NCBI RefSeq assembly: GCF_964194025.1
Contig: NC_134476.1
Location: 34,410,001-34,474,000, forward strand
Length of the DNA: 64,000 nt
Reading direction: 5' to 3'
DNA from: Convolutriloba macropyga
Lineage: Eukaryota
The notes below the pieces were generated by a model that was not told the DNA's origin, made no database searches, and worked only from the letters and a program-made list of their open reading frames with translations. Position numbers and translations under genes: made by a program. Numbering within the stretch: position 1 is the stretch's first letter; each line of letters starts with the position of its first letter. Of the stretch, positions 1 to 54,424 are shown piece after piece.

Positions 1-1242
1 TTTATGTTCAAGCCGGTTTTTATTCGAGTCATATCCAATTAAGAAATATCATATAATTGTTAATTTAACTTTTTCTTCTGTTAATGCTTTGAATTTGTAC
101 GATCAAGATTTGGCCAAACTACAGATGCTCGTGCCATACTTTTATGCGATTAGTTATAATTAAAAAATTGCACACGTGCTAACTGGCGGGTGCATAACGC
201 ATTGGTGGCACAAAAGATCCCAAAAGTAAAAACAAATGCGAGTTTGTGGCTGTTTTGCATTTAATCGTTAAGACTTTATCGGCAAAAATGTGCATTGAAT
301 AAAATTGAGAACAACATTGCTTCCATTTTTATTTTTCTGTAACCGACACTACATCAACCGAATTGACCGACTGGCGACGTCCTAACTTGGCTGAAGTCAA
401 TGCAAAAATCAAAAAGCAAAAATCAATGCAAAAATCGTCAAAGTCAATGCAAAATGTTGTTTCAGCTTTTGAAGAACGACCGGTATCTTTTCTGCTAGGG
501 CCTACCGTTTAGTTTAAGGTAAAATGTACCAAAAAAGAACGCTAGTAAAAGCCTGTAGACTCAATTTCCTCAGTCAATAGTTTAAGGGGTGCTTGTAGGA
601 GTTTCGGGTTCCAGAACTGGAACTTGATGCAGTTAAAATAAGGGCTTTTTGAGCCGCCACATTGGAAAATAAGTGCGAGTTGAAAATTAGATGTGGGATT
701 GAGATGAATGGTGTTTCAGAAGGATGAAGAGCGAGCTCAATTGCCTGATAGCAACATAAAACAAATTATACTACAGTTTTCATTGGAATACCAATCTTCT
801 ACCCCTCATTTAGTAGACACACAAACGCAATTTTTTCTAGAATAATTTACTGGAAACATGGGTGCATAAAATACGAAAGGATTCTGAAGAAAGGGCCGGT
901 AATACCAACTTCATGTTCTATGCGGTACGCACAACAAAAGAAAACAAGCAAGGATCTGACGTCAACGCTTTTAATGGGCTAAACTTTAGGCATCCGGAAA
1001 AGTAGGGCACATGGGCGAATTGGACCTGGCTCTCACCAAACTTTTCCAGAAGAAGAAAGGCACCCGATACAATCTTTTATCTGCACTTCTTCCATTGGAC
1101 TCGCTTCCAAGAATGTGCTTGGTCACAAATTAGGCAAAATTACACATTCACACTCCCATTATATGTTCGCTCAGTTGAAGTTAAGTAAGTTTAAGCGCCT
1201 TTTATACATCTTTGAACACTGTTGACGAAGTTAATTAAGTTG

Positions 1243-1396
1243 TGTAATGAACTCATAAAGAACTTGACTTTTGAGCAGTCAGAACGATAATTTGAATATA
1301 GAACGTGCAAAATGAGGTAGACCAAGACAACACACCAAGACAATATGAATTGATGATTAACAACTTTAAGCAGAGTTATAGATGTAGTTGATGACA
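1243..1396 (+). repeat. 5' LTR (154 bp)
   Basis: TGTAATGAAC...GATGACA, identical by eye to 10261-10414. Confidence 0.97.
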
Positions 1397-1410
1397 TGGC
1401 GCACCAACGT
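1397..1410 (+). other. Primer-binding site, tRNA-Lys-like
   Basis: TGGCGCACCAACGT directly after the LTR; matches the tRNA-Lys(CUU)-type PBS TGGCGCCCAACGT with one extra A. Confidence 0.7.
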
Positions 1411-1507
1411 TAGAAGGCACGAACCCTTGATTGCAGCCTGCCAACACTCGAAGCTAAGTCCAAAGCCATAGCACCCCCATCATTATTTTTTCGAATAATT
1501 TTCTAAC

Positions 1508-2320
1508 ACCCCGCCGTTTTTTTTACGGACAGTACCCCCACCCAGGCAGTGGAGGTACCCCAGCCAAGTTTCGGTCTACCCAACCCACCCTCAGAGGTCG
1601 AACCCCGTGGTTTACGGACGGCACCCCCCCCCCCCCCCAACCAGGGAGCGGAGGAATCCCAGCCAAGTTTCGGTCTACCCAACCCACCCTCAGAGGTCAA
1701 ACCCCGTGGTTTACGGACGGCACCCCCCACCCAGGGAGCGGAGGAATCCCAGCCAAGTTTCGGTCTACCCAAACCACCCTCAGAGGTCGAACCCCGTGGT
1801 TTAAGGACGGAACCCCCCAACCAGGGAGCGGAGGAACCCCAGCCAAGTTTCGGTCTACCCAACCCACCCTCAGAGGTCGAACCCCGTGGTTTACGGACGG
1901 CACCCCCCAACCAGGGAGCGGAGGAATCCCAGCCAAGTTTCCGTCTACTGAACCCACCCTCAGCGGTCGAACCCCGTGGTTTACGGACGGCAACCCACCA
2001 ACCAGGGAGTGGAGGAATCCCAGCCAAGTTTCGGTCAAACCAACCCCCCCTCAGAGGTTGAACCCCGTGGTTTACGGACGGCACCCCCCACCCAGGGAGC
2101 GCAGGAACCCTAGCCAGCTTTCGGTCTACCAAGCCCACCCTCAGAGGTCGAACCCAGTGGTTTACGGACAACACCCCCAACTAGGGAGTGGAGGAACCCC
2201 AGCAAAGTTTTGGTCTACCCAACCCATCACCAGAGGTTAAACCCCGTAGTTTTTCGGACGACACCCCCAACCAGGCAGTGGAGGCGCCCCAACCAAAGTT
2301 GAGTCTACCCAAACCACCCT
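1508..2320 (+). repeat. Tandem array, 90-bp unit, about 9 copies (inside BEL element)
   Basis: CAGCCAAGTTTCGGTCTACC-type motif recurs at about 1561, 1660, 1750, 1840, 1930, 2021, 2111, 2200 and 2290; C-rich plus strand. Confidence 0.95.
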
Positions 2321-2356
2321 TCTCCGGTCACTCGGCAATTCCACCCGCAAGCGGCA

Positions 2357-3480
2357 TTCCCCAGCCTAGTTTTTCCTGGCCAACCAGGATTCCCCACCAG
2401 CAACTACCAACCTGTAGCAGCATTCTGCAGCAGTTTTTCCTGGCTAACCAGGTTTCTCAGCAGCAGCAAGCAACGACAAGCGTCTTTCCCCAGCCTAGTT
2501 TTTCCTGGCCAACCAGGATTCCCCACCAGCATCTTCTAACCAGCAGCAGCAATCTGTAGAAGTTTTTCCTAGCTAACCAGGGTTCTCAGCAGCAGCAAGC
2601 AACGACAAGCGCCTTTCCCCAGCTAGTTTTTCCTGGCCAACCAGGATTCCCCACCAGCATCTACCAACCAGCAGCAGCAATCTGCAGAAATTTTCTTGGC
2701 TAACCAGGGTTCCCAGCAGCATCTATCAAGAAGAAGCGTTATTCCCCAGCCTAGTTTTTCCTGGCCAACCAGGATTCCCCACCAGCATCTACCAACCTGC
2801 AACAGCATTCTGCAGCAGTTTTTCCTGGCTAACCAGGTTTCTCAGCAGCAGCAAGCAACGACAAGCCTCTTTCCCCAGTCTAGTTTTTCCTGGCCAACCA
2901 GGATTCCCCACCAGCATCTACCAACCCGCAGCAGCAATCTGCAGAAGTTTTTCCTGGCTAACCAGGGTTATCAGCAGCAGCAAGCAACGACAAGCGTCTT
3001 TCCCCAGCTAGTTTTTCCTGGCCAACCAGGATTCCCCACCAGCAGCTACTAACCAGCAGCAGCAATCTGCAGAAGTTTTCCTGGCTAACCAGGAATCCCG
3101 GCAGCATCAAGCAAGAACAAGCGTTATTCGCCAGCCTAGTTTTTCCTGGCCAACCAGGATTCCCCACCAGCAGCTACCAACCAGCAGCAGCAATCTGCAG
3201 AAGTTTTCCTGGCTAACAGGAGTTCCCAGCAGCAGTAAGCAACTACAAGCGTCTTTCCCCAGCCTTGTTTTCCTGGCCAACCAGGATTCTTCATCAGCAG
3301 CTACAAACCAACAGCAGCTTTGTGCAGCAGTTTTACTGGAGAACCAGGGTTCCCAGCAGCAGAAAGCAACGGCAAGCGTCATTCCCCAGCCTTGTTTTCC
3401 TGGCCAACCAGCAGCCACCAGCCAAGAGCAGCATTCTGAAGCAGCTTTCCTGGCTAACTAGGATTTCCAACAGCAGCAAC
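2357..3480 (+). repeat. Tandem array, about 129-bp unit, about 9 copies, each with two CCTGG-CYAA-CCAGG hairpins
   Basis: Unit starts at about 2361, 2490, 2619, 2746, 2875, 3003, 3131, 3258 and 3385; CAG-rich; units 1-3 resemble units 4-6 (higher-order repeat). Confidence 0.95.
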
Positions 3481-3566
3481 CCAAATCCACTTCACCTGAG
3501 CACCCAGAATCTTTCCTCTACATCATAACTCACTTATTGTCTCGACGTCCACTGACTATATGTGAC

Positions 3567-4184
3567 ATGCGATATCATCTTTTCAAGTCTTCGAAAACGA
3601 AGTTCATATTGATCACAGATTCGCAGGGAAGACATTTCGAATCTGGAAACCTGAATATAGTATCTCTTCCCGGCGCAACCATCAAAGACGTATATAACTT
3701 TGTTCCCCCTATCAATCAGTACTGTAAAATTATACTGTTTATTGGCGGTAACGACTTGTATAACGGCTGCAAACCTTCAGACAAAACACCAATTGACATC
3801 GCAAATCAGTTGATTGAACTCGCAAATTTTTTGATCGAAAGAACCAAAGAAGTATACCTCATAGGAATACCAGAACGAAACGAAAACAAACAGCGATCAG
3901 CAGCCGTTAACGAAATCCTCGAGAAAGTGTCCAACAGAACTCGTAGTCACAAACCCTCAGTCAACTGGAAGTATAGAGGAATCAGTCAGCATATATCAGG
4001 CGCTAAATACTTCAATCCTAAAGATCATCTTCACCTTAACGAATGTGGTCGCTCAAACCTTCACCACCTTATCAAACAAAAGATTCTGTACAAGGATTAT
4101 AACGTAATGTTGAATAACAGTGGTCACAGCAAAATTTACGAGTGTAAACGGAATTCATGTACGTGCATCTGCTCAACCTGGTAG
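3567..4184 (+). CDS. SGNH/GDSL-hydrolase (esterase)-like protein inside the BEL element
   Basis: Motif blocks in canonical order: I ILITDSQ (Ser nucleophile), II SLPGAT, III LFIGGND, V DHLH; Cys-rich tail. First ATG at 3567; frame is open from 3462. Confidence 0.85.
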   Translation: MRYHLFKSSKTKFILITDSQGRHFESGNLNIVSLPGATIKDVYNFVPPINQYCKIILFIGGNDLYNGCKPSDKTPIDIANQLIELANFLIERTKEVYLIGIPERNENKQRSAAVNEILEKVSNRTRSHKPSVNWKYRGISQHISGAKYFNPKDHLHLNECGRSNLHHLIKQKILYKDYNVMLNNSGHSKIYECKRNSCTCICSTW

Positions 4185-4228
4185 TTTCTACTTCAACTTA
4201 AATTTCACAAATCCTCTTTACATTAAAT

Positions 4229-4420
4229 GTTCACCAGGCTCTGTGAGTAGCCTCTTGAACTACTTGGGAGATAACAGATTACTTCCAAAACATCTCTACT
4301 AGCTGTCCCCAGGTTCCGTGAGGTGCCATTGGTCAGCTGGTAGAGACAGCATTGTCTTCTAACTGTCCCCAGGTTCCGTGAGGTGCCACCGGTCAGTTAG
4401 CAAGACAAATCTCCCCAAGT
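4229..4420 (+). other. Structured RNA element (three GUGA-loop hairpins) between the SGNH ORF and gag
   Basis: Stems 4229-4260 (GTTCA/TGAAC, AGGCT/AGCCT), 4293-4346 (TCTCTACTAGCTG/CAGCTGGTAGAGA) and 4352-4408 (TTGTCTTCTAACTG/CAGTTAGCAAGACAA); enclosing helix 4262-4272/4409-4420. Confidence 0.75.
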
Positions 4421-4588
4421 CAAAAGACCTCTTACATATTCAACGTAGTAATTCGGATTTCTTGTGACCAAATACCAACATCAAATCGTCCGCAAGAAAT
4501 TATAATAGACCAACACAGCCTCAATTCTTTTGAGCATACGTAAAAAGATAAAACTTTACCTACAGAGTTCTATGAAGAAAAGTTAACC

Positions 4589-7500
4589 ATGCCTGCCAAA
4601 ACCGTTGAAAGTCAGCGTAGTTTTCAAAAATATTGCGTTTCGAGCATAAACGATCTGATCGAAGACCTTTCAACTGATGAGAATCTGCCATACGACGAGT
4701 TCATAGAAGGAGAAAAGGAAGTTCAGCAGTTGCTATCTGAGCTAGAAAAGACTAATGAGTTTCTCCTACTCAATCTAGACGAATCAGAACATTGTCAGTC
4801 TTTAGATGAGACATTAGCAGTTAAACGCGACTCCCGCAGAAAACTTAACTTTGTTCGGAGAAAATTAAAAGTCAGTTCTGATCTTGTCAACAATTCAACG
4901 GATACAGAAACAAGATTACCAACAAACCTCCAACAACAAACACTACAAAACGAATCAGAACACAGAGAGATTCCGCAGGAAACTTTATCAGCTTCAACTG
5001 GTATAACACTTAGTTCCAATCAGCCGGCAACGTTTCAAAATACAGAAACATCAAACTTTTCCTTCCATGCATCAACCACAAGAAATTTGTTTGATCAAAC
5101 TACGTTTCCACAACATCAAGCCTCATTTGGTCTGGCAAATTGTCAGGATCACACTCATAGGCAACAATTTATCACTACCCCGATCTCATCAGGAACTCTC
5201 CCGACACTAAAACTTGACACCTTTAATGGCAATCCCCTCACTTGGACAGATTGGATACAGTTATTCGAGTCTGTCATTGACTCGAGGCCACTTAGCACTA
5301 CAGAAAAGATGACGCACTTACAATCACTTCTCACTGGACAAGCAAAGAGTTTAGTTAAAGGCTACGGTTGCAATGGTCAATGCTATCACCAAGCTCTAGC
5401 CGACCTGAAGAAAAAGTATGGCAAGTCTAGCGTCATCGTAAATGCGTACTTAGAAAAACTTGCATCGTTTCCGAGCCCGTCAGCCCAGCGACCCAAAATT
5501 TTGACAATTTTAGTATATTTATAAACGACTTGGTGAATACTTTTACACGCCTGGAATACGAACACGACCTCAAATCAACGATGAATACCCAAGTTGCAAT
5601 ACAGAAATTACCTTATAGTCAACTAGTTGACTGGAGCAAACATTGTGCACAACATCAGATTGAATCTCCCTCCTTAGAGCAGTTCGCCGAATGGCTCTCT
5701 TTGACTGCTCAAACCTTCGAGAATTTAGAACCTTTTTCTCGAAACAAGCTGGGCAGAAATGACTCATCAAATCCGCGGAGCAATCGTTCAAAATATGGGA
5801 ACAATCACCCTAGATATGATCAAAACCAAATTCAAGGAACATCAAGATATGTATCCACGCAAGACAAGATTTCCGACATGCAGACAACTTCAAAATTTAA
5901 CAAAGAACGTAGTCAACATCAAAGGCAGTTCAAGAGTTCTAGAAATCAGCAGCAACAATTAGAAGAAGACCAAAACGTTCCTCAAACCAGCAGAGCTTCA
6001 AAGTGTCTGTTCGAGGACGGCAACCACAGAATATACATGTGCGAAAAATTCAAAAACATGTCCGTTAAGCAGCGTAGGGACGCCATCTATCAACTCAAAG
6101 CCTGTTTCAATTGCCTGAAAATGGGTCACTCTTCAAAAGAGTGCCCTTCTACGCAGAGTTGCAGAAGTTGTAGCAAACGTCATCATACACACTTACACGA
6201 TGAGTCTAGCCAGTCAGCGAATTCAACACATTGCAGTACCGCTGGATCATCAGAACGTCCTGCACTCCTTCAGATACTCCCCGTAACACTCTCAAGGGAT
6301 GGTAAGTCAGTAAACACGTACGCCTTTCTGGACAATGGAAGCGTCGTATCAATGATGTTAACGAAAACTGCTTCCGCACTTGGAATCGTTCTTGACGAAA
6401 AAACCCAACACACAGAATTGCACAAAGGAATCCATGGAACAAAAAGTGTGTCACTCACCAACGTTAACCTTTCAATTAAAGGAATGAGTTCTAATCAAAC
6501 TTTTGATATAGAAGACGTTCAGGTTTCGGCCGACATAGAGTTTCCCCAATATAGTTTAGAATGGATTCGAAAAGTGTGTCAGGAATTTGATCACTTGAAA
6601 CATATTTCATACCCCGACGTTGACATCAATCAAATCTCTATTTTGATTGGATGCGACAATTTTGATCTCATTGCACCTAGAGAGATTCACTATGGTCCTC
6701 CAAATACCACAAGAGCTATTCAAACAGAACTTGGATGGACTGCGTCAGGGAAAACTGATCTGCCCTCAGCAGTAACATGCCAGTCTCAAATTGTCAAAAG
6801 TGAGTCTACAGAGTGCTGCGAAATTGACGACACTCTGTATAACGAAGTACTCAACTGGTACAAAGTTGAAAACTTGCCGTCCAATAAGGACGTCACAAAA
6901 TCAGAGACCGATAAACGCGCATCAGACATTTTGGAATCTACTGTAGAGTTCAAGGAAGGACGATACCACGTTGTGCTTTTATGGAAAAACAAACCCGACC
7001 TGCCAAATAACTTCACTTTAGCCTTCAAACAACTCAACGTCCTAGTTAAGCGACTAGAAAGAGACCCGGAATTGTTAGAGAAATACACGAAAACAATCGA
7101 CGAAGATCTGAAGAAGAATTACATTGAAGAAGTTCCCATAGATAAAACGACTCCAAACATTTGGCACATTCCGCATCACCCTGTCATTAACCCTAACAAA
7201 GCAAAAATAAGAAAAGTTTTGAACGCAGCATCAAAATATCATGGTGTATCATTAAATAACCAACTCATGCCAGGGCCTGACTTGATGCAAAACTTGACCG
7301 GTGTTATCTGCAGGTTCAGGCAGAAAAAAGTTGCGATATCTGCTGACCTTGAAGGCATGTTTATGCAAGTAGGTGTTCGACCACAGGACTAAAAGTTTTT
7401 AAGATTTCTGTGGAAGAAAGGCGAAAAGATAATTTGCTTCCAATTTAGAAGGCACATTTTTAGAGCAAGGTGTTCACCGACATAATGTAACTTCGCCTTG

Positions 7501-10143
7501 CGACGAACAGCGGAGGACAACTGTCAGCAGTACCCTTCAGCAGCCAAGGCAGTCTTACGTTCCTTTTACATGGATGACCTATATCACGCAACAGACACAG
7601 TCGAAGAAGCAATTTCCATTTCAAGAGATCTGAAAAATTTGCTTTTGCTAGGTGGTTTCAATTTAACCAAGTGGTCCTCCAACTCACTTGAAACAATGAA
7701 GTCAATCCCTAAAGAAGACCAGAATCCTAACGATACAAAGGAGTCTACCATTCTACCGCCTATTCCAAAATTCGGAGAAAAAGACGAACAGCCATCATCA
7801 ACTGATACCGAGAGAGTATTAGGAATACAGTGGTCTGTGTCTAGAGACTCTTTCGTTATAAACAGCAAAACATTTAAAAAAGTAGATCTAGAGAACCCCA
7901 CCCAGAGAAAGATTTTGAAGAGTGTTTCATCCATCTATGACCCAATTGGGTTTATTGCGCCCTTCACAGTGCGGTTAAGAACAATCATGCAGGACGTCTG
8001 GCGTTTAGGAAAACAATGGGACAACCTGTTACCTACCAGTTTTGATGCAACACTGAAGTCTCTAATGACAGAAATCAGAAACATTTCCAGCATCGAAATA
8101 CCACGATTTCTGTTCGAGGAGAAAAAGACACCTAAAGAATCAACTCTTCATATCTTTTGCGACGCTTCTCTAACAGCAATGTGTGCCGTAGCATATTTAA
8201 AAACAGAGTATACAGATTCAACTTGTTCAATCAATTTTATAATGGGAAAAGCAAAAGTTCCCCCGATTCGACAGCAAAGCATACCTAAACTAGAACTGGC
8301 AGCAGCTGTTATCGGAGTCCGGCTAGCCTTCTTCATAAAGCAACAGCTCGATGTAACAATTAGCAAAACGACATTTTGGTCGGTTAGCGCAACCACCCTA
8401 CAATGGATTTACAACTCCAAAGAAAGACACAAAATGTATGTAGCAAACAGGGTTGCAGAAATTCTTGAAACAACTTCACCATCAGACTGGCGTCATGTTC
8501 CAGGTGTCTTGAATCCAGCTGACGACGGAAAAAGAGGGTTGAAATTAAACGAGTTCAAACCGGATTGTCGTTGGTTTAACGGCCCACTTTTCTTGAAACA
8601 TGACCCAACAAATTGGCCTGCGACAAAAGTGCCAAATTACCCTTTAGCAGCTTCAATGGCTCTCTCAAGGGCAAACCAGCCACTCATTGACCCAAAACGG
8701 TTCTCAAGCTTTGAAAAACTTAAACGCGTTCTCGCATTTGTAATTTTGTTTATCAGCAACCTCAAAACTACAACGAAGAGTTTCCACTTGACCATAAAAA
8801 CAGTCAATATGAGCAAAACTTATCTACTCAGGCAATCTCAAGAACTCTCATTTGAGGAAGAGCTAGATTGTCTTCGCAAAGACCAAACCGTTCCAGCACA
8901 CTCAAAAATAAAAAATTTCTTGCCCTTCATTTCCGACGACGGAGTTATAAGAGCCAATGGAAGTCTTGCCAATGCAAATCAACTGGAAGAAAACTTACAA
9001 ACCCCAGTAATCCTAAGTGGCAAAGAACATATAACTTTTCTTATGCTTAGAGACATTCACAACCACAATGGACATACAGGACTCGACCATTGCCGTTTCA
9101 TTGTTCAACAGTCCTTTATTGTAATCAGCCTTCGCTCCACCTTATGAACAATAATCAACCGATGTTTCGATTGCCGTCGACAAAAAGCAGTAGCGTTGCA
9201 ACCTCAAATGTCACCCCTGCCAGACTTTAGAATTCCAAATACTGAAAACTTTAATTTTCAAAATACGGGTGTAGATTTCTTTGGTCCTTTCGCTATAAAG
9301 GCCAGCGACAACTTGTATCCAAAACGATACGCTTGCATCTTCACTTGCCTTACCACGAGAGCCGTTCATCTAGAACCAGCTTACCATTTAAGCACTGATT
9401 CCTTTATTCAAGCGATACTGAGGTTTACTGCCCGTCGAGGAAACCCTCACCTCATTGTCTCTGATAATGGTAGAAATTTCGTTGGCGCTTCTCGTGAACT
9501 CATTACAAAAGTAAACCAATTCGACCACCAGGAAATCAGTGACCGATTACTCAAAGAGACCATCGAATGGAAGTTCATCCCACCATACGCATCCCACTTC
9601 GGAGGAGCATGGGAAAGACTCGTGCAGTCCTCAAAACGAATTCTCTACTCAGTGATTGGCTCTCAAATGTTGACCGAAGAAACATTTCACTCGTTCCTAA
9701 CTCAAGTCGAAGAAATCCTGAACAGCAGGCCTTTGACTTACGTCCCAGACAACGGTTTGTCTTATCAACCAATCACGCCTAATCATTTCCTTATCGGTCG
9801 ACCTCACAAACGTTTGCCGTCAATACTATCAATCACTAAAGATTACAACAAGGACTGGAAAAGATGTATTACCCTTTCACATCAATTTTGGACACGACTC
9901 CTGCGCGAGTTCATACCCACAATGGCTAGGAGACCCAAATGGATAAAAGATCAGAAGCCTCTCGAAGTTGGTAGCCTTGTTTGGATATTGGAAGACATGA
10001 CTCCACGAAGTATTTGGCCCGTCGGTATTGTCGAAAAATTGTCTCACAGCAATGATGGAAAAGTTAGATCATGCGAAATCAGAACTGGGTTCGGGAAACA
10101 AACAAAACCAGTAAACAAATTGGCACTAGTAATTGACGACTAG
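4589..10143 (+). pseudogene. gag-pol: BEL/Pao gag-pol polyprotein, disrupted
   Basis: Gag LPTLKLDTFNGNPLTW; knuckles CFNCLKMGHSSKEC and CRSCSKRHHTHLH; protease FLDNGS; RT YMDD; RNaseH HIFCDAS/IPKLEL; integrase GVDFFGP, SDNG, WERL. Frameshift at about 5495; stops at 7390, 7483 and 9145. Confidence 0.95.
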
Positions 10144-10246
10144 GAAACGGATCATAACGTCGAAACAGGACACAAATTTAATGAACAGTAACCACATTCA
10201 CAAATTTTAACAAATCATTAACCCTTTAGGTTTTGACTACAACGCC

Positions 10247-10260
10247 AAAACGAGGGGGAC
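10247..10260 (+). other. Polypurine tract
   Basis: AAAACGAGGGGGAC directly before the 3' LTR. Confidence 0.85.
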
Positions 10261-10414
10261 TGTAATGAACTCATAAAGAACTTGACTTTTGAGCAGTCAG
10301 AACGATAATTTGAATATAGAACGTGCAAAATGAGGTAGACCAAGACAACACACCAAGACAATATGAATTGATGATTAACAACTTTAAGCAGAGTTATAGA
10401 TGTAGTTGATGACA
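10261..10414 (+). repeat. 3' LTR (154 bp)
   Basis: Identical to 1243-1396; followed by TSD AGTTG. Confidence 0.97.
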
Positions 10415-11191
10415 AGTTGTGCATATATTAAAAGGTGGCACATCTATGATTTTAAATTAGACGTATTTCAAAAAAAATTTGTTACAGATAATTCTTATCA
10501 TCAAAAACTTCTGCATTACTTTTTGTTGCTGTCATCTATAATAAGGGCTCAATATTTTGAGAAAAAATAAATAACGAGGCGCCAGCAGAAAAAAAATCCT
10601 ATGGCTAAATGGCCGCAACAAACGACAAACTAAAGTATACCAATGCGACTAATAAGAGCCCTAGCTATCGATATGTTGCTATTGAACCGTAAAACTTTCC
10701 ACATCTTCGTAAACGTCGCGATGATATTACGAACGTCCCAGTGACAACTTAACACCCTTCTTGATAAGTAATGTGCAGCACCCAAGCTCAAAACCAATTT
10801 CTGTAATAACTGAATTTAAATTAATTTTCTTAGACGTCTCTTTAACTTTTCCTTGTTAATCGGAAAGGTCAGTTCAAATCAAGAACAAATCATTCTGTCA
10901 CTAGGGACACATTTTGAACGTGCAAAAAGATTAACCCAATCAAAAAACTATTGCCCATCCTACAGTTCACCGTTGTTCATTTAACATTATAAATAGCTTT
11001 TAAAAATCATTTTAAAATAAGATTGCTGTTCAATAGAACAGTCGCATAACACTTTTAACTCATAAACAAAGCGTCGAAAAATAATAGATTGTAGTTACTT
11101 TAAAAACTAATGTTAAAAAACGCGCTGCAAGATGTCAGATCGCTTTACAAGGGTAATTTTGATTGAAAAAATCTCATTTCACAATAAGACA

Positions 11192-13202
11192 AACATGGAC
11201 GCTCGGTAATGTGCGTTCGCATATAATGTTCCGACCCCGCTCATCCCGAATTTTGACTTAATTGTATTCCAAATGAATGAAAACAGTTCACCCAAACTCA
11301 AACCATCAAATAAAATAAATAATGCCGCTCTAGAAGACCGATGAGCTATGCCATTGACTACGAGACAAGACAACCAACAAAATCAAATAAAAAACAAAGA
11401 TTGATGACGACCAAAACTCAATGTCTACAATCTAAATTAAACAAATTAACTTGAACTTCATTAAAAAAGATATTAGACCTGTCCTTAAGTAGACTAGGTA
11501 TCAAGTAGACAATAAAGAAAAAAGGGGCAAAATTAAAATAACGCATCTACATTTTCGGAAAACATTTAATTAAGAAGTCATGAAAATCATTAGTTATTAA
11601 CTGAAATCATTTAATAAGTTCATTTTTTCCCCAAAAAAATCCATTGACTCTTTGTTATCCATAATAGATCATCCGACTAATAAAATGAGGACAAACACTT
11701 CCAACTATCAACAATTGAATAAAAAATTGCTAAAAATTAGTGTTGAAGCCAATATAAAATAATACGCTATAAACTCAAAACATAAAAAGGTATAATTGGG
11801 CCTATGCTCAACGCCAATAGGACCTGTATTTACTGTGTTAATGTGACCAACACCCAAAAATGACCTTAAATTTGAGCCCAATCCACCAAAATCACAAAAT
11901 TTTTCTGGAAGCTCGTAGTATCAAAGAAAGAAAACCAAAAATTCCGTCAAAAAACAGCAAAGTATAATATAATTTGGGTGCCCATACTGTCATTAATGAG
12001 ACTAATCTACAAGGTGACAGCAAAAAAATTGACAAGGCGGCAAATTTCAAAATGCTCCCATATTTTTTTAAAACAATTATATTCAAAGTCAGGAAAACCA
12101 TTAGCCATTAACTGAAATCCTGAAATAAACTCATTTAAACCTCCAAAGGAAGCCATTGAGACCTGTTTTTATCCAGATTATGTCAAACGACTACAACAAG
12201 AACCACAATTATCGACAGAAATACACAAACCAATTAAAATTCGAGAGTAAACGGTGTCTATTCCCGTTAAAACCATAATCTATTCACTAATTTTACATAT
12301 GTTAAAATCTGCCTTTACTTTCAAGGCCATTATGGTGACATCTGACCTGTCATTTTTGTAATATTTTGACAAGACAAAAAAGAACAATAAAAAAGTGACA
12401 ACTGTTCAAAAATCACTAAAAAATATGAAAACTTGTAGTATCAATGCATAAAAACTACTTCTTAAAACGTAAAAACAAAACTCAAGACTAACGTTTAATT
12501 CATTAGAAAGAAGCTCATTGCACAAGTTGAAAGAAATACGATGGAAAATGGCAAAAGCTCAAAACGCATAACAACAATACATCCAAGTTGTAACAAAAGT
12601 ACTTTTTCAACTAACAAAAAACTAGATAGATCAGGTTGCAGCTACTTGTGAGGCCAATACTTGTGAGCAGTCATTATAATGTTCATTGGACCTAATTTGC
12701 ACATAAATAGACACTAATTGGCCAAAGAATTGAAACCATCCCGGTCTATAATTTTATAATTAACATAAAAGAATAAAAAAAAGAGCGCCCAATAAAATCT
12801 GAATAAATTTTTGTAAAAAAAAATTCACAAGTAGATCAAGACCTTGTTATTACTGCTCCCACAATAAAAACAGTCAAAAACAATCAAGTGTTCCAAATGT
12901 TATTCAAATAGAAAATTTGACAAAAAAAGTCAATATTTTTAAAATAAATGAAATTTGATTTTGGAATTTTAGACAAAAATTCAGATCAAACAGTTCAGCA
13001 ACACTCCTCTACCTTTAAGTTAAAACCAATAACACTATCGTTAGCAATAGTCAGATGTTCACAAAAGTTTAAAGCTCGATAGCGCCTTGGAAAAAAACAA
13101 AACCCGAAAATTTACAATGAATATATCGACCGACCCAAATTGATTGAACATAAACAAAACAGTTGATCATAGAATTCTTCCCCACTAAAGTGGGCTGAAC
13201 AA
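11192..13202 (+). mobile_element. Helentron/DINE-1-like non-autonomous element, copy 1
   Basis: Left end AACAAGGAGGCTCGG-like start, ATGTGCG-TT-CGCATAT hairpin, subTIR TGTTCCGACCCC (11227); right-end hairpin CCCACTAAAGTGGG; internal homology to 49988-52939. Confidence 0.65.
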
Positions 13203-14874
13203 AAAATACTTAACAAAATTTTCAAAAAAAGTTGGCCTGAATGTGAACGCCTTCAATTTTGTATGAAAGGTTGATATTTTTCTGTAAAAAAAACGAGCAC
13301 ACAAATTTTGAGAACGTTTCTTTCCGATTCTCATAAACACGACTAATGAAAATACAGATAATGTGTTAAATGTGTAGCCAATAGTAATTCTTTTACATGC
13401 TACAACAAATAAGAGGCTTCAGTTTAAGAGGATACACTTTTTTTGCTTCAGCACGTGCCATCATTGAGCCTACAGATCTGACGAGTTTTTTAAATGACGA
13501 CATGGAATTGCTCAGTTCTATCAGCCTACTAATACAAGAGGAACAAACAATTCATTTATGACAAAAATTGGCTCCTCTTATGAAAAGAATGTGGTTTGCT
13601 CAATCAAAACAATTTGATTCCAGCATTATTTTAAAAGAATTTTTGTCGACTTATGAAAAGAAATTTGCTGCATCGATATTTGTGAGGAAAAAACTCGGCT
13701 CAACATGTATAATTCATTTGGCTTTTTTTATCTGGGGCTCGGGACTATGTAATTTTAGTCATCATTTACCAGTGCATTTTTGCTTTAATGATAACTCATA
13801 TAAAAATAGTCAAACGTTTCAAGGACATTTTCAAGATTTGTTCATTTGCTGTCATCGAACGGCATCTATTTATGAAACGAGTGTGGCGAATTCGAAGTAC
13901 ATATTTAACAGATAACTCAAAAAGGAAAAAAATCAGTTATCCGTAAGTCCTTTTATTTTTGAAACATATTCCCAAACAAGGAGCAAATATTTACAAATAA
14001 ATCGTTGACAAAGCAAGCATCATTTGTCTATTGTTTTCATTCAATTCAGCGAGCGAAAAACAACCAGGAAAATATTTAACTAATTTCCTTAGTTGGGGTA
14101 ATTGAAGAAAGGATAGCATCTTTTTAACAAGCTAATCACGCGTGAGGAAAAGATATTGTTTTCACGTAGTTGCGGAAATTGTTCTCGTTTCTGGGGAAGA
14201 TTTCTGATATTATTTTGAAATCAAATGGACAGAGAAGCGTGAAACAAGTGAATACACCGGACAAAAGTATCCCCTTTCCCGATCAAAAACAGCACGAATC
14301 ATGGAGCGTGGAAAATTGCTAGAAAAATCTACGGAAATTAACACCTCTTCAATCCCTAGTTTATCTAAATAGCCACTAACCCAACATCCAATCCCCGCCC
14401 TACACCCCCCCCCCCTCCAAACCGCACCGTTTGTATTGGTTTATCATACAGCTGACTTGTGTCGTTGCAGCAGTGTTGAAAATTACTCAAATTCCATAAT
14501 AATGAACACATTTGTAATTGTAACATTTGTAAGGACTCACCACTACCACCAACTCCAATTAGCACAAAACTTTAGGGCCAATGGGACTCAAACGGACTAT
14601 CTGCAAAACCACTGTCTAGCCTTTACGTCACAGCCCGGATCGTTCATTTGTGCTCAAGCTTAGTGGGTGCATGTTGTTTTAAACCCCAGGTACATGTGCC
14701 ATATTCTAACGTAATTATGTACTATGCAATGGAAATCGTTCTTTTGCGTGGGGGGGGGGGGGGGGGTGGGGGGGCAGGAGGGGGGAGGGGGCACTAAAGG
14801 AAAATATCCTACAGCCCTAGTAATATGGCTGTCGGGTTTTAATACCAGCTGGTGGTTGTAACACATTGAAGTGT

Positions 14875-14877
<3 letters not shown>

Positions 14878-14931
<54 letters not shown>
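14878..14931. repeat. (CT)n microsatellite
   Basis: Pure dinucleotide run. Confidence 0.99.
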
Positions 14932-16860: not shown

Positions 16861-17092
16861 TTTTTTTTACTAGCTAATAAGTCGCCAAAAAGAAAAAACG
16901 GATCGAAGATCCAAAATCCAACGAATTTTTTATACCAAATCACTTTAAAAGCCATACAAACCATTAATCAATATAATAGATAGATTCAGATAAAAATACT
17001 TATGATTACATTGGGAACTATCATAGGTGAAATTATGGACACTAAGTCATTAGCTTACGAAATAACAAATATATTATACTTCAAAATGGTAG

Positions 17093-17344
17093 NNNNNNNN
17101 NNNNNNNNNNNNNNNNNNNNNNNNNNNNNNNNNNNNNNNNNNNNNNNNNNNNNNNNNNNNNNNNNNNNNNNNNNNNNNNNNNNNNNNNNNNNNNNNNNNN
17201 NNNNNNNNNNNNNNNNNNNNNNNNNNNNNNNNNNNNNNNNNNNNNNNNNNNNNNNNNNNNNNNNNNNNNNNNNNNNNNNNNNNNNNNNNNNNNNNNNNNN
17301 NNNNNNNNNNNNNNNNNNNNNNNNNNNNNNNNNNNNNNNNNNNN
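17093..17344. other. Assembly gap (N)
   Basis: Run of N. Confidence 1.
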
Positions 17345-18269
17345 TAATGGCCTCAAAACTTTTCTCTCTAAGAATCTTGCGCCTCCATTCAATGCCAATG
17401 GGAACTGAGCGCTTATGTGACAAGAGTCCAAAAAAGCCACAAATGTAGGCAAATATGAGGGAATCACAATTATATGAAAACTCTTAGTCAACTATCAGTG
17501 AAACATAAAACCGCCAAACAGATTAACTTTTGCTTCAAATGAGAAAGAATGGGCCTCGTCATCAGTGAGACTAAGCTACAAATTAAATGAAGAAGTGACG
17601 AAGTTCAAAAATTTACTATAAATTTCTAATTAATCAAACTCAAAAGAGCTATTAGTTATTAACCGAAAGCATAATTTCACTAATACTTCTTTGGATAGCC
17701 AATTGAACCTTTAAACAATCGGACTAAGCCATTAGACTATAAATAGAACAGCAAATGAAACAAAACTAAGATATCTTCAAAACATTAGCGGATCCATAAA
17801 AACCAAAAGTTTTCTTCTGAAAAAATAATAGTTCAATGAGCCTGATAGTGAAAATGTGATCTCCCATTCGTTGAACCTCTGTATGAAAACTGACTTGTCT
17901 AAATACAAACAGATTTAATTTTGCTCCACGAAGATCCACGATAAGACCAATTCTGGCCTTGCAATTCGAAATGTTAACGTTGAAGAAAGTCTAAATATGT
18001 CAAAAAATAATAATCATTTTAGATCTATCAAATTAGCGAACGGCCTCGAAAATTTTGATTACAGAACACGTTCTAAGGAAGCAAAAGTAAAATTAGTCCT
18101 CATCTGAAAATTCGAAGACTGTCAGCAGTTTTAGGTGTGTACTTCCGGCCATTTCTACAAAGTGGGCTAAAGAAGCACATTCAATAAAAAAGCTGAACTT
18201 CGTAATTTTTAAGCGTAAAAGTCAGATCACACAATTCAGCAGCCCTTCCCTACAAGTTCTAATCGCAAT

Positions 18270-20141: not shown

Positions 20142-21434
20142 CTAGCTTTTGTCGTTTTCATGTTCATCGTCAGATTTCGGACTTTTGGAGTCCACGTCAG
20201 GAGAAAGCAAACTGTCAATTCTGAAACACCTTTTCTGTCGTTTCTTCATCGGTGGAGTCAATTTAACTGCGGTTATTTCATTCTCGCTCTCACTGAAGGG
20301 TTCAGACATTTTCACTGCAAATTTCGAGGGCGAAATATCACTTGAAATATTACTTGAATTTAACGTGTCTGTGTCATTGTCGTCATTATGTTCACGCTTT
20401 TGACCTTTTGCTCCCAAATGAGAATCAAATTTTCCAACGTTGGAGGAATTAATTTGCGATGGAAAAGTGGGAATAGTCGAATTTTGGCCAGGAAGCTTGA
20501 AAGTTGTACTTGCATCTCGATCTGTGGAATGTTGAAATTGGAACTTAATTGGGCTAAACTGAGATCCGGAAGGCTGGGCAGCGACTGGAGAGGGACTTCG
20601 GTTGCCGTCTGACTCGTCATCGGCGACCGCCAATCCCATCGCTTTCCTTACTTTCCTTTGCGCGTGTCGTCTTCTGAAGTCGCCCTTTGCAAAGTCGTCC
20701 CTACAGGCCGGGTGAATTGCCCAAAAATGGCCCTTTCCGTTTGCACTTCGCCCTGCTTTCACAAAACAATCATTCAGCGACAAATTGTGACGGATGCTGT
20801 TTCGCCATCCAGGACCGCGGGTTCTGAAGTAAGGGTAATTGTCCAAAATGTACTGATAGATATCGCTCAAAACCAACTTTTTTTCGGTCGAGTTTAAAAT
20901 GGCCATGGCAATTAGTCCAATATAACTATGGTTTGGTTTGGGTTCTTCTTGTAGCAAAGAGTAAGGGTTCAAAAATCCATTCAAAGCTCCGGAGGGGCTC
21001 CCAGAAAAGTCTCCAATTTGTCCACTGGTCGATCCAGGGTGAGTCATGAAATAAGGAAAAAGTCTGGAATGTTCTGTAGTAGTTGAAACTGCAGCTTGGC
21101 TAGCTTGAGTCATTGAACGAAGTAAAACGGCCGAAGCCAAAGAATGGCCAATTCTGGTTGAAGTCAACGAATTTGCTAAGAGTTGGTGAGTTTGTGGGGG
21201 AAATTGGGGAGTTATTGTTCCATTGTGGGGTGATGTTTGGGAACTTTTCAAAAATCCCTGTACGGACATGTGATCCAGAGAACCTCCTGAAGTTTTCACA
21301 CCTGGTGGCGTGATTTGGGATCCATTTATTCCAAGGGATTTGTTTTGGTTTCCCGGAATAAAATTGGGTTTAAGTTGGCTATTACTGGCTTGTGCTCCAG
21401 CGGTAAACAATGGATAGCTATTGAATGTATACAT
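20142..21434 (-). CDS. foxQ2: Forkhead transcription factor, FoxQ2 family (fd102C-like, C-terminal eh1 motif)
   Basis: Domain KPNHSYIGLIAMAIL...LVLSDIYQYILDNYPYFRTRGPGWRNSIRHNLSLNDCF...GRSANGKGHFWAIHP...GDFRRRHAQRKVR is diagnostic of FoxQ2; C-terminal FRIDSLL eh1. First ATG at 21434; an upstream exon is not excluded. Confidence 0.92.
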   Translation of the reverse strand: MYTFNSYPLFTAGAQASNSQLKPNFIPGNQNKSLGINGSQITPPGVKTSGGSLDHMSVQGFLKSSQTSPHNGTITPQFPPQTHQLLANSLTSTRIGHSLASAVLLRSMTQASQAAVSTTTEHSRLFPYFMTHPGSTSGQIGDFSGSPSGALNGFLNPYSLLQEEPKPNHSYIGLIAMAILNSTEKKLVLSDIYQYILDNYPYFRTRGPGWRNSIRHNLSLNDCFVKAGRSANGKGHFWAIHPACRDDFAKGDFRRRHAQRKVRKAMGLAVADDESDGNRSPSPVAAQPSGSQFSPIKFQFQHSTDRDASTTFKLPGQNSTIPTFPSQINSSNVGKFDSHLGAKGQKREHNDDNDTDTLNSSNISSDISPSKFAVKMSEPFSESENEITAVKLTPPMKKRQKRCFRIDSLLSPDVDSKSPKSDDEHENDKS

Positions 21435-21674
21435 GACAACGATATTTATCAATTTAACAATAGTAAAATATATCGTATTGATTTTAAACTTTCAAGTTAT
21501 TTAAATAGATGAAATATTTAATAACTTTTTGTCTTTAAGTTATACTATTCGATTATAGCTAAGTCTTTTTGGTTGGTCACTTTTAAAATGAAGTACAATT
21601 TTCAGCCACACAGAACTTGGCCTGTAAATTTTTTTGTCTAATTTTTTAAGAGCTGTTTTTAAGAGTTGTTTAAA

Positions 21675-26451: not shown

Positions 26452-27299
26452 TCAATTTATGCCAAATATCTTGACAAGAACGCAAAGTTTCCCTTCCTTC
26501 AACCATTCGCCTTGGTTTGCTTCAATTTCGTTCAACTTTTTTACTTTTTCACAGCCCCAACCGGATTTACCCACCTCGAATTTGCTACATTGGTCCACAC
26601 GAACTGATTTCAAAGGACAGTTCCAATTATGAAGCGTTAGTCGGTATCTAACTTCATTGATTGGGTATTCCTTGTGATCAGCAAACAGGGCTCCAAGCAC
26701 AGGAAAAGCGATAGCCAAGTTGCTTCGTGAATGCAATGATTCACATAGAACTTGTAAAATTGATATATCGCCTTTTCTGTAGTTGAATCACAGTATTGAT
26801 ATCGGTCATCATGATAACTTATCAGGAGGCCAAAACTATGCGGCTCTGCGAGTTTCAACATATTGCACTTTTCTTTTTTAAGTACCTTCAACAATTTCAA
26901 AACAACAGAAAAGTCAACTTGCGCCCCATCTCCGGCGACTGTTTGTCTCAGAACGTCCAATTCATCTGCTGAAATCTTGAGTTCCATGAGATCCAAATCA
27001 TTCTGGTACTTAGCTCCAATCAATTTGTAATCTTTGACTTCAGAAGATAGCAGTTCAAGGAAATTTCTGCAATACTGCCTATTCTCAAGCACAGGCAACC
27101 TTTGAAGAGCTTCCGAAACCAGAGATGATAGAGCGTATTTGATCATTTTAAAATTACATTTCTGGTGCTCTGAATCAACGCACGTTTCACACAGAACTTC
27201 TTTGCATTCACTGCACCAAAATTGATAACAATTTTCAGGGTGTTTTTCGCAAGACGAGTAGTCGAACTCTTTTCCTAGACAACGTTTTTTTGCGGCCAT
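26452..27299 (-). pseudogene. B-box-coiled-coil-MATH TRIM-like gene A (RING-less), frameshifted
   Basis: B-box CEKH..WCSECKEVLCETC..HQKC; MATH-like C-terminus TLHNW..GWG..WLKEGKLCVLVKI. 1-bp deletion at about 26687 (GAG CCC TG TTT vs GAG CCC TTG TTC in gene B); could be an assembly error. Confidence 0.85.
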
Positions 27300-54212: not shown

Positions 54213-54424
54213 GTCGAAAATCTGAAAAAAAAATTTGAAGTTCATTTGAGACCAATGATTTCACGAATAAATAAAACTCAATCATTAATAGTCTAAACTC
54301 ATTAATACTGTCGTAAATTGGCATTATGATACTCATAATTTATTTAGCCAGGATCTGATCTGCTATTAAATTGGCAGCCGTCGGGAAAATTCTTTTAATA
54401 CCCAAAGTGGCTTGAGTTTTTAAA

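Follow-up and report, generated by a model that had tools for sequence, protein, structure and literature searches.

A BEL/Pao retrotransposon family of Convolutriloba macropyga probably carries, ahead of its gag gene, a cassette that came from a LINE-like element. The cassette consists of a stand-alone open reading frame for an SGNH-type esterase, which we call ORF0, followed by one to three stem-loops. It appears common to unrelated classes of retroelements, because the same combination of gene and hairpin heads LINE-like and gypsy-like elements too. The copy described here is found in the window, by which we mean the whole stretch of 64,000 nucleotides that was analysed (contig NC_134476.1, positions 34,410,001 to 34,474,000). 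The relevant features of the window are as follows.

1238 to 1242, no strand: target-site duplication, 5' copy (AGTTG), a pentamer repeated at 10415-10419
1243 to 1396, forward strand: 5' LTR of 154 bp, TG...CA, 0 mismatches with 10261-10414
1397 to 1414, forward strand: putative primer-binding site (from sequence), starting with TGG and abutting the LTR
1397 to 3566, forward strand: leader of 2.17 kb, nearly free of ATG (ATG count against expectation)
1522 to 2320, forward strand: tandem array 1, 90-bp unit, about 8.8 copies, 86% matches, C-rich, 61% GC (TRF)
2348 to 3411, forward strand: tandem array 2, 128-bp unit, about 8.3 copies, 88% matches (TRF)
3567 to 4184, forward strand: intact ORF of 205 codons, predicted stand-alone SGNH/GDSL-type esterase (motifs, Pfam, AlphaFold model, Foldseek)
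4294 to 4345, forward strand: stem-loop 1 of the cassette, -29.9 kcal/mol (folding)
4354 to 4406, forward strand: stem-loop 2 of the cassette, -23.9 kcal/mol (folding)
4589 to 10143, forward strand: gag-pol region of the BEL/Pao element (Pfam matches; stop and frame counts)
5222 to 5503, forward strand: DUF1759 domain of BEL/Pao gag (Pfam E=6.3e-16)
6100 to 6150, forward strand: CCHC zinc knuckle, zf-CCHC (Pfam E=5.2e-4)
7900 to 8382, forward strand: Peptidase_A17 domain of Pao retrotransposons (Pfam E=1.7e-45)
9274 to 9534, forward strand: integrase core, rve (Pfam E=1.1e-6)
9853 to 10128, forward strand: DUF5641, the BEL/Pao integrase C-terminal domain (Pfam E=1e-19)
10247 to 10259, forward strand: polypurine tract just before the 3' LTR (sequence)
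10261 to 10414, forward strand: 3' LTR of 154 bp, identical to the 5' LTR
10415 to 10419, no strand: target-site duplication, 3' copy (AGTTG; sequence)

The element itself (1243-10414) belongs to a multi-copy family of BEL/Pao LTR retrotransposons and was inserted recently. Its short LTRs form a perfect pair with TG...CA ends, flanked on both sides by the 5-bp target-site duplication, and the inner ends carry the primer-binding site and the polypurine tract. The class to which the earlier note had assigned it is borne out by these termini and by the domains, with DUF1759 in gag, the zinc knuckle, a Pao-type Peptidase_A17 in pol, and the integrase core followed by DUF5641. A Pfam match to RVT_1 was recorded for another copy, L001. 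Gag is an open ORF of 311 codons. Pol, in a different frame, is interrupted by three premature stop codons, with no frameshift inside it. At the env position, from the stop codon of pol to the 3' LTR, the list of ORFs shows nothing longer than 80 amino acids. The window holds no tRNA gene with which the primer-binding site could be compared.

The interval from the primer-binding site to gag holds two tandem arrays, the 205-codon ORF and two near-identical hairpins; arrays, ORF and structured RNA had all been reported there from the bare letters, and they are found at the positions listed above. The leader that precedes the ORF has a single ATG, which opens an ORF of one codon, where 22 +/- 4.3 would be expected. 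This depletion is common to the window copy and to two further copies of the element, L001 and L008, with one or two ATGs against about 20 expected. Each 128-bp unit of array 2 comprises two CCTGG-N4-CCAGG mini-palindromes. Array 1 is also present in L001 and L008, with other numbers of repeats. The arrays had been thought to belong to a module of repeats and RNA structure, and this part of the proposal fails: array 1 folds more weakly than its shuffled versions (z=+4.4) and array 2 neither clearly better nor worse than its own (z=-0.9), which rules them out as structured RNA. Neither the arrays nor the region upstream of the ORF can be counted as parts of the cassette, as loci L002-L007 are devoid of such arrays and of any similarity upstream.

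The protein encoded by the ORF has, as modelled, an SGNH fold with a complete Ser-Asp-His and Gly-Asn active-site set, and it is predicted to be an esterase. Its motifs succeed one another in the order ITDSQ, LPGA, FIGGND and DHLH, with S19, G36, N62, D153 and H156 as the putative catalytic residues. The nucleophile of block I, S19 in ITDSQ, is a serine in 45 of 48 aligned full-length members of the family and is invariant in alignment A2, where the oxyanion-hole residues of blocks II and III (G36 in LPGA, N62 in FIGGND) and the D153 and H156 of block V are each at least 90% conserved. One relative, P0010, has a tyrosine in place of the catalytic histidine of DxxH. The Pfam model Lipase_GDSL matches the window ORF with E=7.6e-5 and 23.4 bits, slightly below its cut-off of 23.6, and Lipase_GDSL_2 is matched by 18 of 28 family members (best E=1.5e-8). 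An AlphaFold2 model built from 28 sequences reached a pLDDT of 94.2 and a pTM of 0.91, and in it the esterase fold begins at about residue 3 of the 205. Foldseek retrieved 85 PDB matches at E<=1e-3, nearly all annotated as SGNH/GDSL-type among the top 50 listed; the best were PAF acetylhydrolase Ib (1bwr, 1vyh) and sialate O-acetylesterases (6xpg, 6njc), with TM scores of 0.56-0.65 overall, 0.60-0.65 for the latter, and probability 1.0. Model and matches agree with the three-layer alpha/beta/alpha, flavodoxin-like arrangement (TM up to 0.65). The identification of the ORF as an SGNH hydrolase with all its catalytic residues, proposed earlier from motifs, thus holds on the four motif blocks, the model and the fold matches. 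In a library of viral folds the matches were generic SGNH ones only, belonging to phages and giant viruses; none resembled a haemagglutinin-esterase. The protein ends in an H-x5-C-x5-C-x-C motif.

When the window ORF was used alone in a phmmer search of the PDB, it found no match. A profile of 28 family sequences did, and its best match was the esterase of ZfL2-1 ORF1p (4c1b_A, E=1e-3, 21.9 bits), the next one having an E value of 0.05. A buried His-Ser pair, H191/S228, is reported to be conserved in transposon esterases (ORF1p of CR1, L2, RTEX and PLE) and nowhere else (Schneider et al., 2013; PMC3905857). When the family is aligned to 4c1b by HMM, F58, invariant in alignment A1, and L98 take these positions, the column of S228 being less certain than that of H191; the characterised LINE esterases are therefore no more than distant kin. 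The absence of this pair, together with fold matches that are best among cellular enzymes such as PAF acetylhydrolase Ib, would suit a BEL element that had captured an SGNH gene of its host independently, with no relationship to the esterases of retroelements. We consider this very improbable: in all eleven genomic contexts of family members that were examined the ORF sits in a retroelement, never in a stand-alone gene of the host, the hairpin is inherited together with the ORF, and the sequence match that ranks first in the PDB is a retroelement esterase.

The family comprises stand-alone esterase ORFs of about 200 amino acids; at E<=1e-3 it counts 444 cluster representatives, almost all of them 190-210 amino acids long. 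Among about 49 full-length representatives with identities of 27-53%, each of the S, G, N, D and H residues is retained in 41-46. Wherever its context was examined, the esterase ORF comes first among the cistrons of a retroelement, mostly of the non-LTR type. There the layout is the esterase ORF, then a separate, Cys-rich ORF1, then APE+RT (L002, L003, L005/L007, L006, L011, L013). This ORF1 is unrecognised by Pfam as a PHD finger, and 'PHD-like' can describe only the spacing of its Cys and His residues. More distant versions of the esterase are found in the same genomes as the first ORF of two gypsy-like LTR families, followed by gag-PR-RT-RH-IN between short LTRs (L004/L009, L010). A scan of metagenomes with alignment A1 gave two coral-metagenome loci, with one relative in a Cyphastrea coral metagenome. 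A RING/B-box/MATH gene cluster was noted as well. It is as first ORFs of non-LTR elements that the nearest relatives of the BEL esterase (50-53% identity) occur, which upholds the view that the ORF was captured. In a neighbour-joining tree the BEL protein is nested in a clade of non-LTR proteins (P0010 and P0013), with the gypsy-linked ones elsewhere. Since its nearest relatives reside in non-LTR elements and a stem-loop follows most esterase ORFs, the BEL cassette is most likely derived from a LINE-like element, a direction that is read from the topology of seven labelled sequences and from the majority of contexts.

Judged from sequence comparison, the hairpins are part of this putatively captured cassette; other classes of retroelements have them too, downstream of their esterase ORFs. 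The spacer between the ORF and gag (4185-4588) folds with z=-6.5 against shuffles, a signal that comes from the two hairpins and substantiates the structured RNA described earlier. A 23-nt core of stem-loop 2 is nearly identical to the hairpin that follows the esterase ORF of the non-LTR locus L002, with an alignment score of 38 where shuffles reach at most 30; upstream of the ORF, by contrast, the window and L002 display no similarity. Stem-loops of the same design, one to three in number, come after the esterase stop codon in most of the retroelements examined. A covariance model, R1, made from the window and L002, recovers L001 (two hairpins) and L008 (one). It also ranks the hairpins of L005 and L007 first in 89 kb; the more distant hairpins are reached only at E of about 0.3. 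A hand-made structural descriptor, loose and designed after the hairpins had been seen, gave about 130 matches against about 90 in shuffled sequence. Its enrichment downstream of esterase ORFs, about 120-fold at >=9 outer pairs, is a hand estimate made post hoc and is supportive only. Aligned with MAFFT, the hairpins of the various loci gave nothing that made structural sense; Rfam, run on positions 1-11000, gave two sub-threshold chance matches, mir-370 and SNORA74 (21 bits against a gathering score of 71); ARAGORN found no tRNA-like element in the hairpin region; and a scan for promoters and terminators of the bacterial type is not relevant to a eukaryotic element.

Because the closest relatives of the ORF belong to non-LTR elements, the window might be suspected of displaying an accident, namely a non-LTR fragment inserted in, or mis-joined by assembly to, the 5' UTR of a single BEL copy. 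This is refuted, as close to fully as such things can be, because L001 and L008 share the arrangement. They are full BEL copies with their parts in the order seen in the window, on other contigs with different flanks; each has a 5-bp target duplication of its own (AGTCA and GCTTT, respectively) and LTRs that differ by 1 and 10 mismatches. The cluster of proteins at least 90% identical to one another counts 23 distinct sequences, each on one contig in the 15 listed. As had been noted before, and as reading the sequence by eye confirms, neither a poly(A) tract nor an internal target duplication flanks the ORF, and no remnants of ORF1 or ORF2 accompany it. A normal LINE insertion, furthermore, is truncated at its 5' end, whereas the captured piece is a 5' end. 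The ORF is thus constant in the family, as seen in three full copies that each have a target duplication of their own.

Whether it is of use to the lineage is another matter. The earlier note had looked to purifying selection as a mark of function, and within the BEL family this mark is missing: between the window, L001 and L008 the dN/dS of the esterase is 0.92-1.83, close to 1, on 8-20 changes per pair (Sd 1-4, Nd 7-17), as against 0.15-0.76 for pieces of gag-pol of the same copies. The 79 distinct amino acid variants of 14 copies do not avoid columns conserved in the family (p=0.24-0.50) but spread evenly over conserved and variable ones, two of them striking D153 or H156. Some 15 further, fragmentary relatives lie at 70-95% identity, and many relatives in that range are truncated. 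All this would fit a relic that a BEL ancestor had caught and that has been copied along as a passenger, contributing nothing, its ORF still open only because the copies are young. Yet the counts are tiny, and most differences between copies of a transposable element are neutral and arise after insertion, whatever the function of the sequence. The 205-codon ORF is open in all three BEL copies, even in L008, where 10 of 154 LTR positions differ and gag-pol is rearranged; between the window and L008 nucleotides diverge by 2.9% in the ORF, less than the 4.5-6.0% of gag-pol. The BEL esterase has diverged by about 47% from its nearest known relative and yet keeps every catalytic residue, while the AUG-free leader puts the ORF first for translation in all copies. 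A mere passenger is accordingly a reading that we hold to be unlikely.

On the reading that we hold to be probable, in which the cassette was acquired from a LINE-like element, the capture may have taken place when reverse transcription switched templates from one co-packaged RNA to another. The esterase would be the first cistron translated, after ribosomes had scanned the AUG-free, weakly structured leader of 2.2 kb. Gag-pol, some 400 nt further downstream, might then be reached by reinitiation or internal entry, either of them with help from the hairpins, or from a spliced RNA. The esterase of ZfL2-1 ORF1p hydrolyses esters and binds acidic phospholipids (PMC3905857) and, by analogy, the BEL protein could act on membrane lipids, or bind them, in the assembly or trafficking of particles or RNPs; through the Cys/His motif at its C-terminus it may also be attached to nucleic acid. 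One might go further and imagine that ORF and stem-loop make up a self-contained first-cistron cassette that moved repeatedly among LINE-like, BEL/Pao and Ty3/gypsy-like elements in the genomes of marine invertebrates, the stem-loop being the functional partner of the ORF. This is a possibility that we advance tentatively and with some doubt. The stem-loop could then be a signal that sends ribosomes on to the next cistron or, alternatively, the RNA site for the C-terminal Cys/His knuckle, tethering a lipid-binding enzyme in cis to the RNA that encodes it.

Esterase ORFs are among the least understood accessory functions of retroelements. Their known carriers so far were the ORF1 domains of some LINEs, the post-pol ORF of the bdelloid Vesta elements, and Ngaro elements. 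The BEL/Pao superfamily newly joins them, with the first cistron ahead of gag as a new position. LTR-borne and LINE-borne versions are now linked by direct homology of the protein and of the adjacent RNA hairpin, which turns the exchange of modules among classes of retroelements into something concrete that can be dated. The yield is a compact, well-folding protein family and a candidate cis-acting RNA element. These findings touch on a part that has been proposed for lipids and membranes in the assembly of retroelement particles.

Several known systems invite comparison. Tandem repeats occur in the 5' UTRs of LTR elements of insects, roo and gypsy among them, and here too the arrays follow the primer-binding site and precede the first ORF; those of the window, however, are not known to be related to them in sequence, are free of AUG and, in the case of array 1, are unusually unstructured. 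PAF acetylhydrolase Ib and the bacterial sialate O-acetylesterases, the best structural matches, are small, single-domain deacetylases of the cytosolic type. They are just 14-19% identical to the ORF protein and are cellular or bacterial enzymes, so that homology is implied at the level of the superfamily only.

The ORF1p esterase of CR1/L2/RTEX-type non-LTR retrotransposons was reportedly described by Kapitonov and Jurka in 2003. It is the type IV ORF1p of CR1, L2 and RTEX elements, with ZfL2-1 ORF1p (PDB 4c1b) as its solved example, and it has been proposed earlier that clades of LINEs exchanged this ORF horizontally (Schneider et al., 2013, PMC3905857; Metcalfe and Casane, 2014, PMC4120745). 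The BEL protein shares with these the SGNH fold, the full catalytic set and a position upstream of the RT-containing ORF; 4c1b is the best, though marginal, sequence match of the family profile among solved structures, and its closest relatives likewise head elements with APE and RT. The differences are several. While the relatives in L002, L003, L005, L006, L007 and L013 lie 5' of an APE+RT ORF2, the window copy precedes gag. The window-type esterase is a separate cistron placed before a Cys-rich ORF1 or gag, with no fusion to an N-terminal coiled coil or zinc finger. It adds the C-terminal H/C3 motif, a conserved stem-loop accompanies the ORF, and the carrier is a BEL/Pao LTR element.

Ngaro elements of the DIRS order in fish and amphibians also possess an accessory SGNH hydrolase ORF (Goodwin and Poulter, 2004, as relayed in PMC9210276). 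As far as that description goes, the ORF follows a tyrosine recombinase, in elements with split direct repeats and no integrase. Finally, in bdelloid rotifers a GDSL esterase is encoded by ORF3 of the Vesta LTR retrotransposons and of Athena/Terminon Penelope-like elements, and the Vesta version does not cluster with LINE esterases (Rodriguez, Kenefick and Arkhipova, 2017; PMC5408684). Vesta resembles our case in being an LTR retrotransposon with an extra GDSL/SGNH ORF, in its intact catalytic residues, in sharing the type of ORF with other classes of retroelements, and in variation within the family that does not clearly depart from neutrality (PMC5408684). It differs in that Vesta is Ty3/gypsy-like and bears its ORF after pol, at the env position, whereas the window ORF stands between leader and gag; the ORF studied here is a first cistron, in BEL/Pao and gypsy-like elements alike, and is 50-53% identical to ORFs borne by LINEs. 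The novelty that had been suggested for this architecture is therefore partial: a GDSL ORF in an LTR element was already published for Vesta, in the ORF3 position (PMC5408684), while its place as the first cistron of a BEL/Pao element gives it both a new carrier and a new position.

The BEL element of the window is a complete LTR retrotransposon (1243-10414). Its LTRs, of 154 bp each, run from TG to CA and are identical, and the pentamer AGTTG borders the element at both ends. A primer-binding-like site, initiated by TGG, directly follows the 5′ LTR, while a purine tract lies ahead of the 3′ LTR. The domains recognized by Pfam in the coding part are hallmarks of BEL/Pao elements. The gag gene is an open ORF of 311 codons; pol, in a different frame, has three premature stop codons and no internal frameshift. 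Everything that the earlier note had listed between the primer-binding site and gag (arrays, 205-codon ORF, folding spacer) is present.

Internal parts of the BEL element (window positions); all but the last lie between the primer-binding site and gag
1522-2320, tandem array with a 90-bp unit (array 1)
2348-3411, tandem array with a 128-bp unit (array 2)
3567-4184, esterase ORF, 205 codons, open
4294-4345 and 4354-4406, two near-identical hairpins in the spacer between ORF and gag, with strong folding (z=-6.5)
from 4589, coding part (Pfam: DUF1759 in gag, CCHC knuckle, Pao Peptidase_A17 region, integrase core, DUF5641)

The arrays are rejected as structured RNA. Compared with shuffled sequence, array 1 folds much less well (z=+4.4 against dinucleotide shuffles at 1633-1993, a part that is C-rich and G-poor) and array 2 is neutral. 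Array 1 seems to avoid structure, which would fit ribosome scanning.

About 4.4 kb downstream of the element (14748-14931) are a perfect (TC)27 microsatellite and a 19-bp repeat rich in G. Runs of N, either assembly gaps or masking, occupy 17093-17344 and 56427-56626; ORFs called at 17002-17491 span the first of these and are not meaningful. The Forkhead ORF is a host gene for a transcription factor and lies about 10 kb away from the element. Tandem expansions of RING/B-box/MATH genes are typical of marine invertebrates. The short gag-like ORF is probably the leftover of another LTR element.

Other ORFs in the window
20142-21452 (-), 435-aa ORF without interruptions, Forkhead domain at E=4e-34
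26637-27299, 34048-34902, 53301-54245 and 62440-63621 (all -), four tandem RING/B-box/MATH paralogues, TRIM/TRAF-like
44803-45225 (-), 139-aa ORF with a weak Retrotrans_gag match (E=6.5e-5)

Two further full copies of the BEL family were found.

Full BEL copies outside the window
L001, 7907-16750, ENA assembly ERZ25071359
L008, 6080-16016, ENA assembly ERZ25071359

They share with the window the order LTR, array 1, array 2, esterase ORF, hairpin(s), gag-pol, LTR. Target duplications of 5 bp are specific to the copy (AGTCA in L001, GCTTT in L008), flanks are unrelated, and the two LTRs differ by 1 mismatch in L001 and 10 in L008. The three copies thus inserted independently and at different times. 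Leader length varies with the arrays (2170 nt in the window, 1940 in L001, 1767 in L008), and L008 has one hairpin against two in the window. The claim that the esterase ORF would be constant across the family is borne out, since both copies have the layout of the window and the 205 codons are open in all three. The corresponding protein cluster, at 90% identity or more, comprises 23 distinct sequences; among the 15 listed, nine cover the full length and each comes from a single contig. Some 15 further relatives (70-95% identity) are truncated. The L001 and L008 copies and the 23 distinct variants rule out both a chimeric assembly and a nested insertion peculiar to one copy. In L008, the older copy, part of pol is duplicated internally (11415-13317), with two gene calls containing the Pao peptidase; window segments 6257-7060 and 7717-8813 are each matched twice.

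The 205-codon ORF is an SGNH hydrolase. The motifs ITDSQ, LPGA, FIGGND and DHLH come in canonical order. Taken as a single sequence, the protein falls just short of Pfam Lipase_GDSL (23.4 bits for a threshold of 23.6) and a search of the PDB gave no match. A word-indexed search found 23 relatives; an exhaustive profile search found 444 cluster representatives (E<=1e-3), nearly all of 190-210 aa. About 85-95% of 52 full-length representatives (27-53% identity) retain the active-site residues, namely the nucleophilic Ser, the Gly and Asn of the oxyanion hole and the Asp/His pair; 18 of 28 selected members match Lipase_GDSL_2. AlphaFold2, with a 28-sequence alignment, gives a model with pLDDT 94.2 and pTM 0.91 for the whole chain. 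Foldseek retrieves 85 PDB matches for it (E<=1e-3); nearly all of those listed are SGNH/GDSL-type enzymes, with platelet-activating factor (PAF) acetylhydrolase Ib subunits and sialate O-acetylesterases on top (TM 0.56-0.65). The best sequence match of the family profile to a solved structure is 4c1b, the esterase domain of the ORF1 protein of the zebrafish LINE ZfL2-1 (E=1e-3). A short C-terminal H-x5-C-x4-6-C-x-C motif recurs in 12 of 53 family members under the strict pattern, and in no shuffled sequence.

Where does this ORF come from? Genomic context was inspected for eleven independent family members, and in every case the esterase is the 5′-most ORF. The closest relatives outside the BEL family are P0010 (53% identity) and P0013 (50%). 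Each is followed by a spacer of 300-400 nt, a second ORF, then an ORF coding for an apurinic endonuclease and a reverse transcriptase, which assigns both to non-LTR elements. The same three-ORF layout appears in L005, L006, L007 and L013, the latter a contig from the metagenome of a Cyphastrea coral. Locus L011, which is degenerate, retains an esterase ORF, a Cys-rich ORF1 and an RT fragment only. In these relatives a conserved stretch rich in Cys, MRxNCxTC...CCxxC...H...C, opens ORF1, and a region resembling a coiled coil comes after it; ORF1 spans 10780-11694 in L002 (the P0010 locus), 10957-11814 in L005, 9946-10488 in L007 and the spacer 8619-9174 in L011, to be compared with L006 (9821-10633), where the start differs. 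The Cys-rich stretch looks PHD-like by its spacing; Pfam made no PHD call on the middle ORF of the non-LTR loci. In P0010 (L002 10001-10615) a Tyr replaces the catalytic His of block V, the remaining active site being intact; this protein may be an inactive variant that only binds lipids.

Members more distant from the BEL esterase belong to another class. P0018 (37% identity, cluster of 30) and P0029 are the first ORFs of small LTR elements of the Ty3/gypsy kind, encoding a retropepsin-type protease, RT, RNase H and integrase, with the esterase ATG 16-18 nt past a terminal repeat of 116-136 bp. Such gypsy-like elements, very compact at 4.1-4.7 kb, lie at L004 9849-14000, L009 12906-17615 and L010 7867-12061. 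They have no obvious TGG primer-binding site, and (AT)n runs adjoin the terminal repeats of L010. A neighbour-joining tree places the BEL esterase within the clade of P0010 and P0013, which non-LTR elements carry, and the gypsy-borne esterases elsewhere, hence at least two acquisitions by LTR elements. Several loci hold further repeats or mobile elements: a tandem duplication of about 1.37 kb over the start of the esterase ORF (L011 6000-8817), a satellite-like array of period about 0.8-1.07 kb downstream of the degenerate element (L011 12585-16594), a Polinton/Maverick-like DNA_pol_B_2 ORF (L005 17502-19178, -) and a Ty1/copia element with RVT_2 and Retrotran_gag_2 (L009 5150-8559, -).

The esterase does not move alone. 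Spacers 3′ of its stop codon in other loci fold into one to three tandem stem-loops of common design. The lower stem varies in sequence; it is followed by an internal loop of 3 nt, a GG...CC clamp and a 1x1 mismatch (mostly U/U), then by a short apical stem, usually containing CC/GG, with a loop of 4-7 nt. A 23-nt core of the L002 hairpin matches those of the window almost base for base (local alignment 38 vs a shuffle maximum of 30); regions upstream of the same two ORFs have no similarity. A covariance model based on the hairpins of window and L002 finds two in L001 and one in L008 (E<=1e-19); those of L005 and L007 rank at the top in 89 kb, but only with E ~0.3. A structural descriptor is enriched about 120-fold in post-esterase spacers at 9 outer pairs or more, by hand count, with the proviso that it is loose, was written post hoc and often matches shuffled sequence. 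Rfam holds no family matching the hairpin. As far as sequence comparison tells, the hairpins travel with the esterase ORF. The arrays, being absent from the other loci, are rejected as part of this shared cassette. Capture of the cassette and its co-propagation with the BEL family are established.

Is the enzyme useful to its carrier? The evidence counts both ways. Purifying selection, which the earlier note proposed as a check, is not supported: dN/dS among the three DNA copies is 0.92-1.83 (1-4 synonymous, 7-17 non-synonymous changes), that of gag-pol pieces being 0.15-0.76, a difference not significant at these counts. Moreover, the 79 distinct amino-acid variants seen among 14 cluster members show no avoidance of columns conserved in the family (odds 0.67-0.81, p 0.24-0.50), and two of them fall on D153 or H156. 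This speaks against retained function. In favour of constraint, the esterase ORF is the least diverged segment between window and L008 (2.9%, others 4.5-6.0%) and it is open even in that old and rearranged copy. The esterase may have a function within BEL, and the earlier interpretation of a captured accessory protein is partly supported, capture included, and extended by the cassette.

A route to expression can be proposed. The 2.17-kb leader has a single ATG, where 22 +/- 4 are expected, and those of L001 and L008 have two, for about 19, with an effective sample smaller than these counts suggest, as two repeated units make up most of the leader. The ATG of the window leader starts a one-codon ORF seven bases before that of the esterase. 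A scanning ribosome would meet the esterase ATG first, and the genomic RNA would thus have the esterase as its first cistron. Gag-pol, 404 nt downstream, would be reached via reinitiation, internal entry or a spliced RNA, and the conserved hairpins would be the obvious candidate signal. In some LINEs, RNA structure downstream serves coupled translation, and the hairpins can be likened to it. As for substrates, PAF and sialate deacetylases as structural neighbours of the model suggest a small acyl group.

Published work describes esterase ORF1 proteins in CR1, L2, RTEX and Penelope-like elements and suggests that LINE clades have exchanged them (PMC3905857, PMC4120745). GDSL ORFs lie 3′ of pol in the bdelloid Vesta LTR elements and in Athena elements, and were judged unrelated to LINE esterases (PMC5408684); the SGNH ORF of Ngaro elements sits past the recombinase (PMC9210276). 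Full-text searches of the literature yielded neither an esterase described for a BEL/Pao element nor one described upstream of gag. The esterase of ZfL2-1 ORF1p hydrolyses esters and binds acidic phospholipids and liposomes, and Gag-like membrane targeting has been proposed for it (PMC3905857). It is the best functional guide for the BEL protein, which by analogy would work in the manner of a LINE ORF1p esterase and is a possible member of that group. Unlike published transposon esterases, the present family lacks a coiled coil and has the esterase as a separate cistron; the published buried pair H191/S228 corresponds to Phe58/Leu98. For transposon biology, the value of the system lies in a cassette of protein and RNA hairpin that crosses element classes, and in its first-cistron position.
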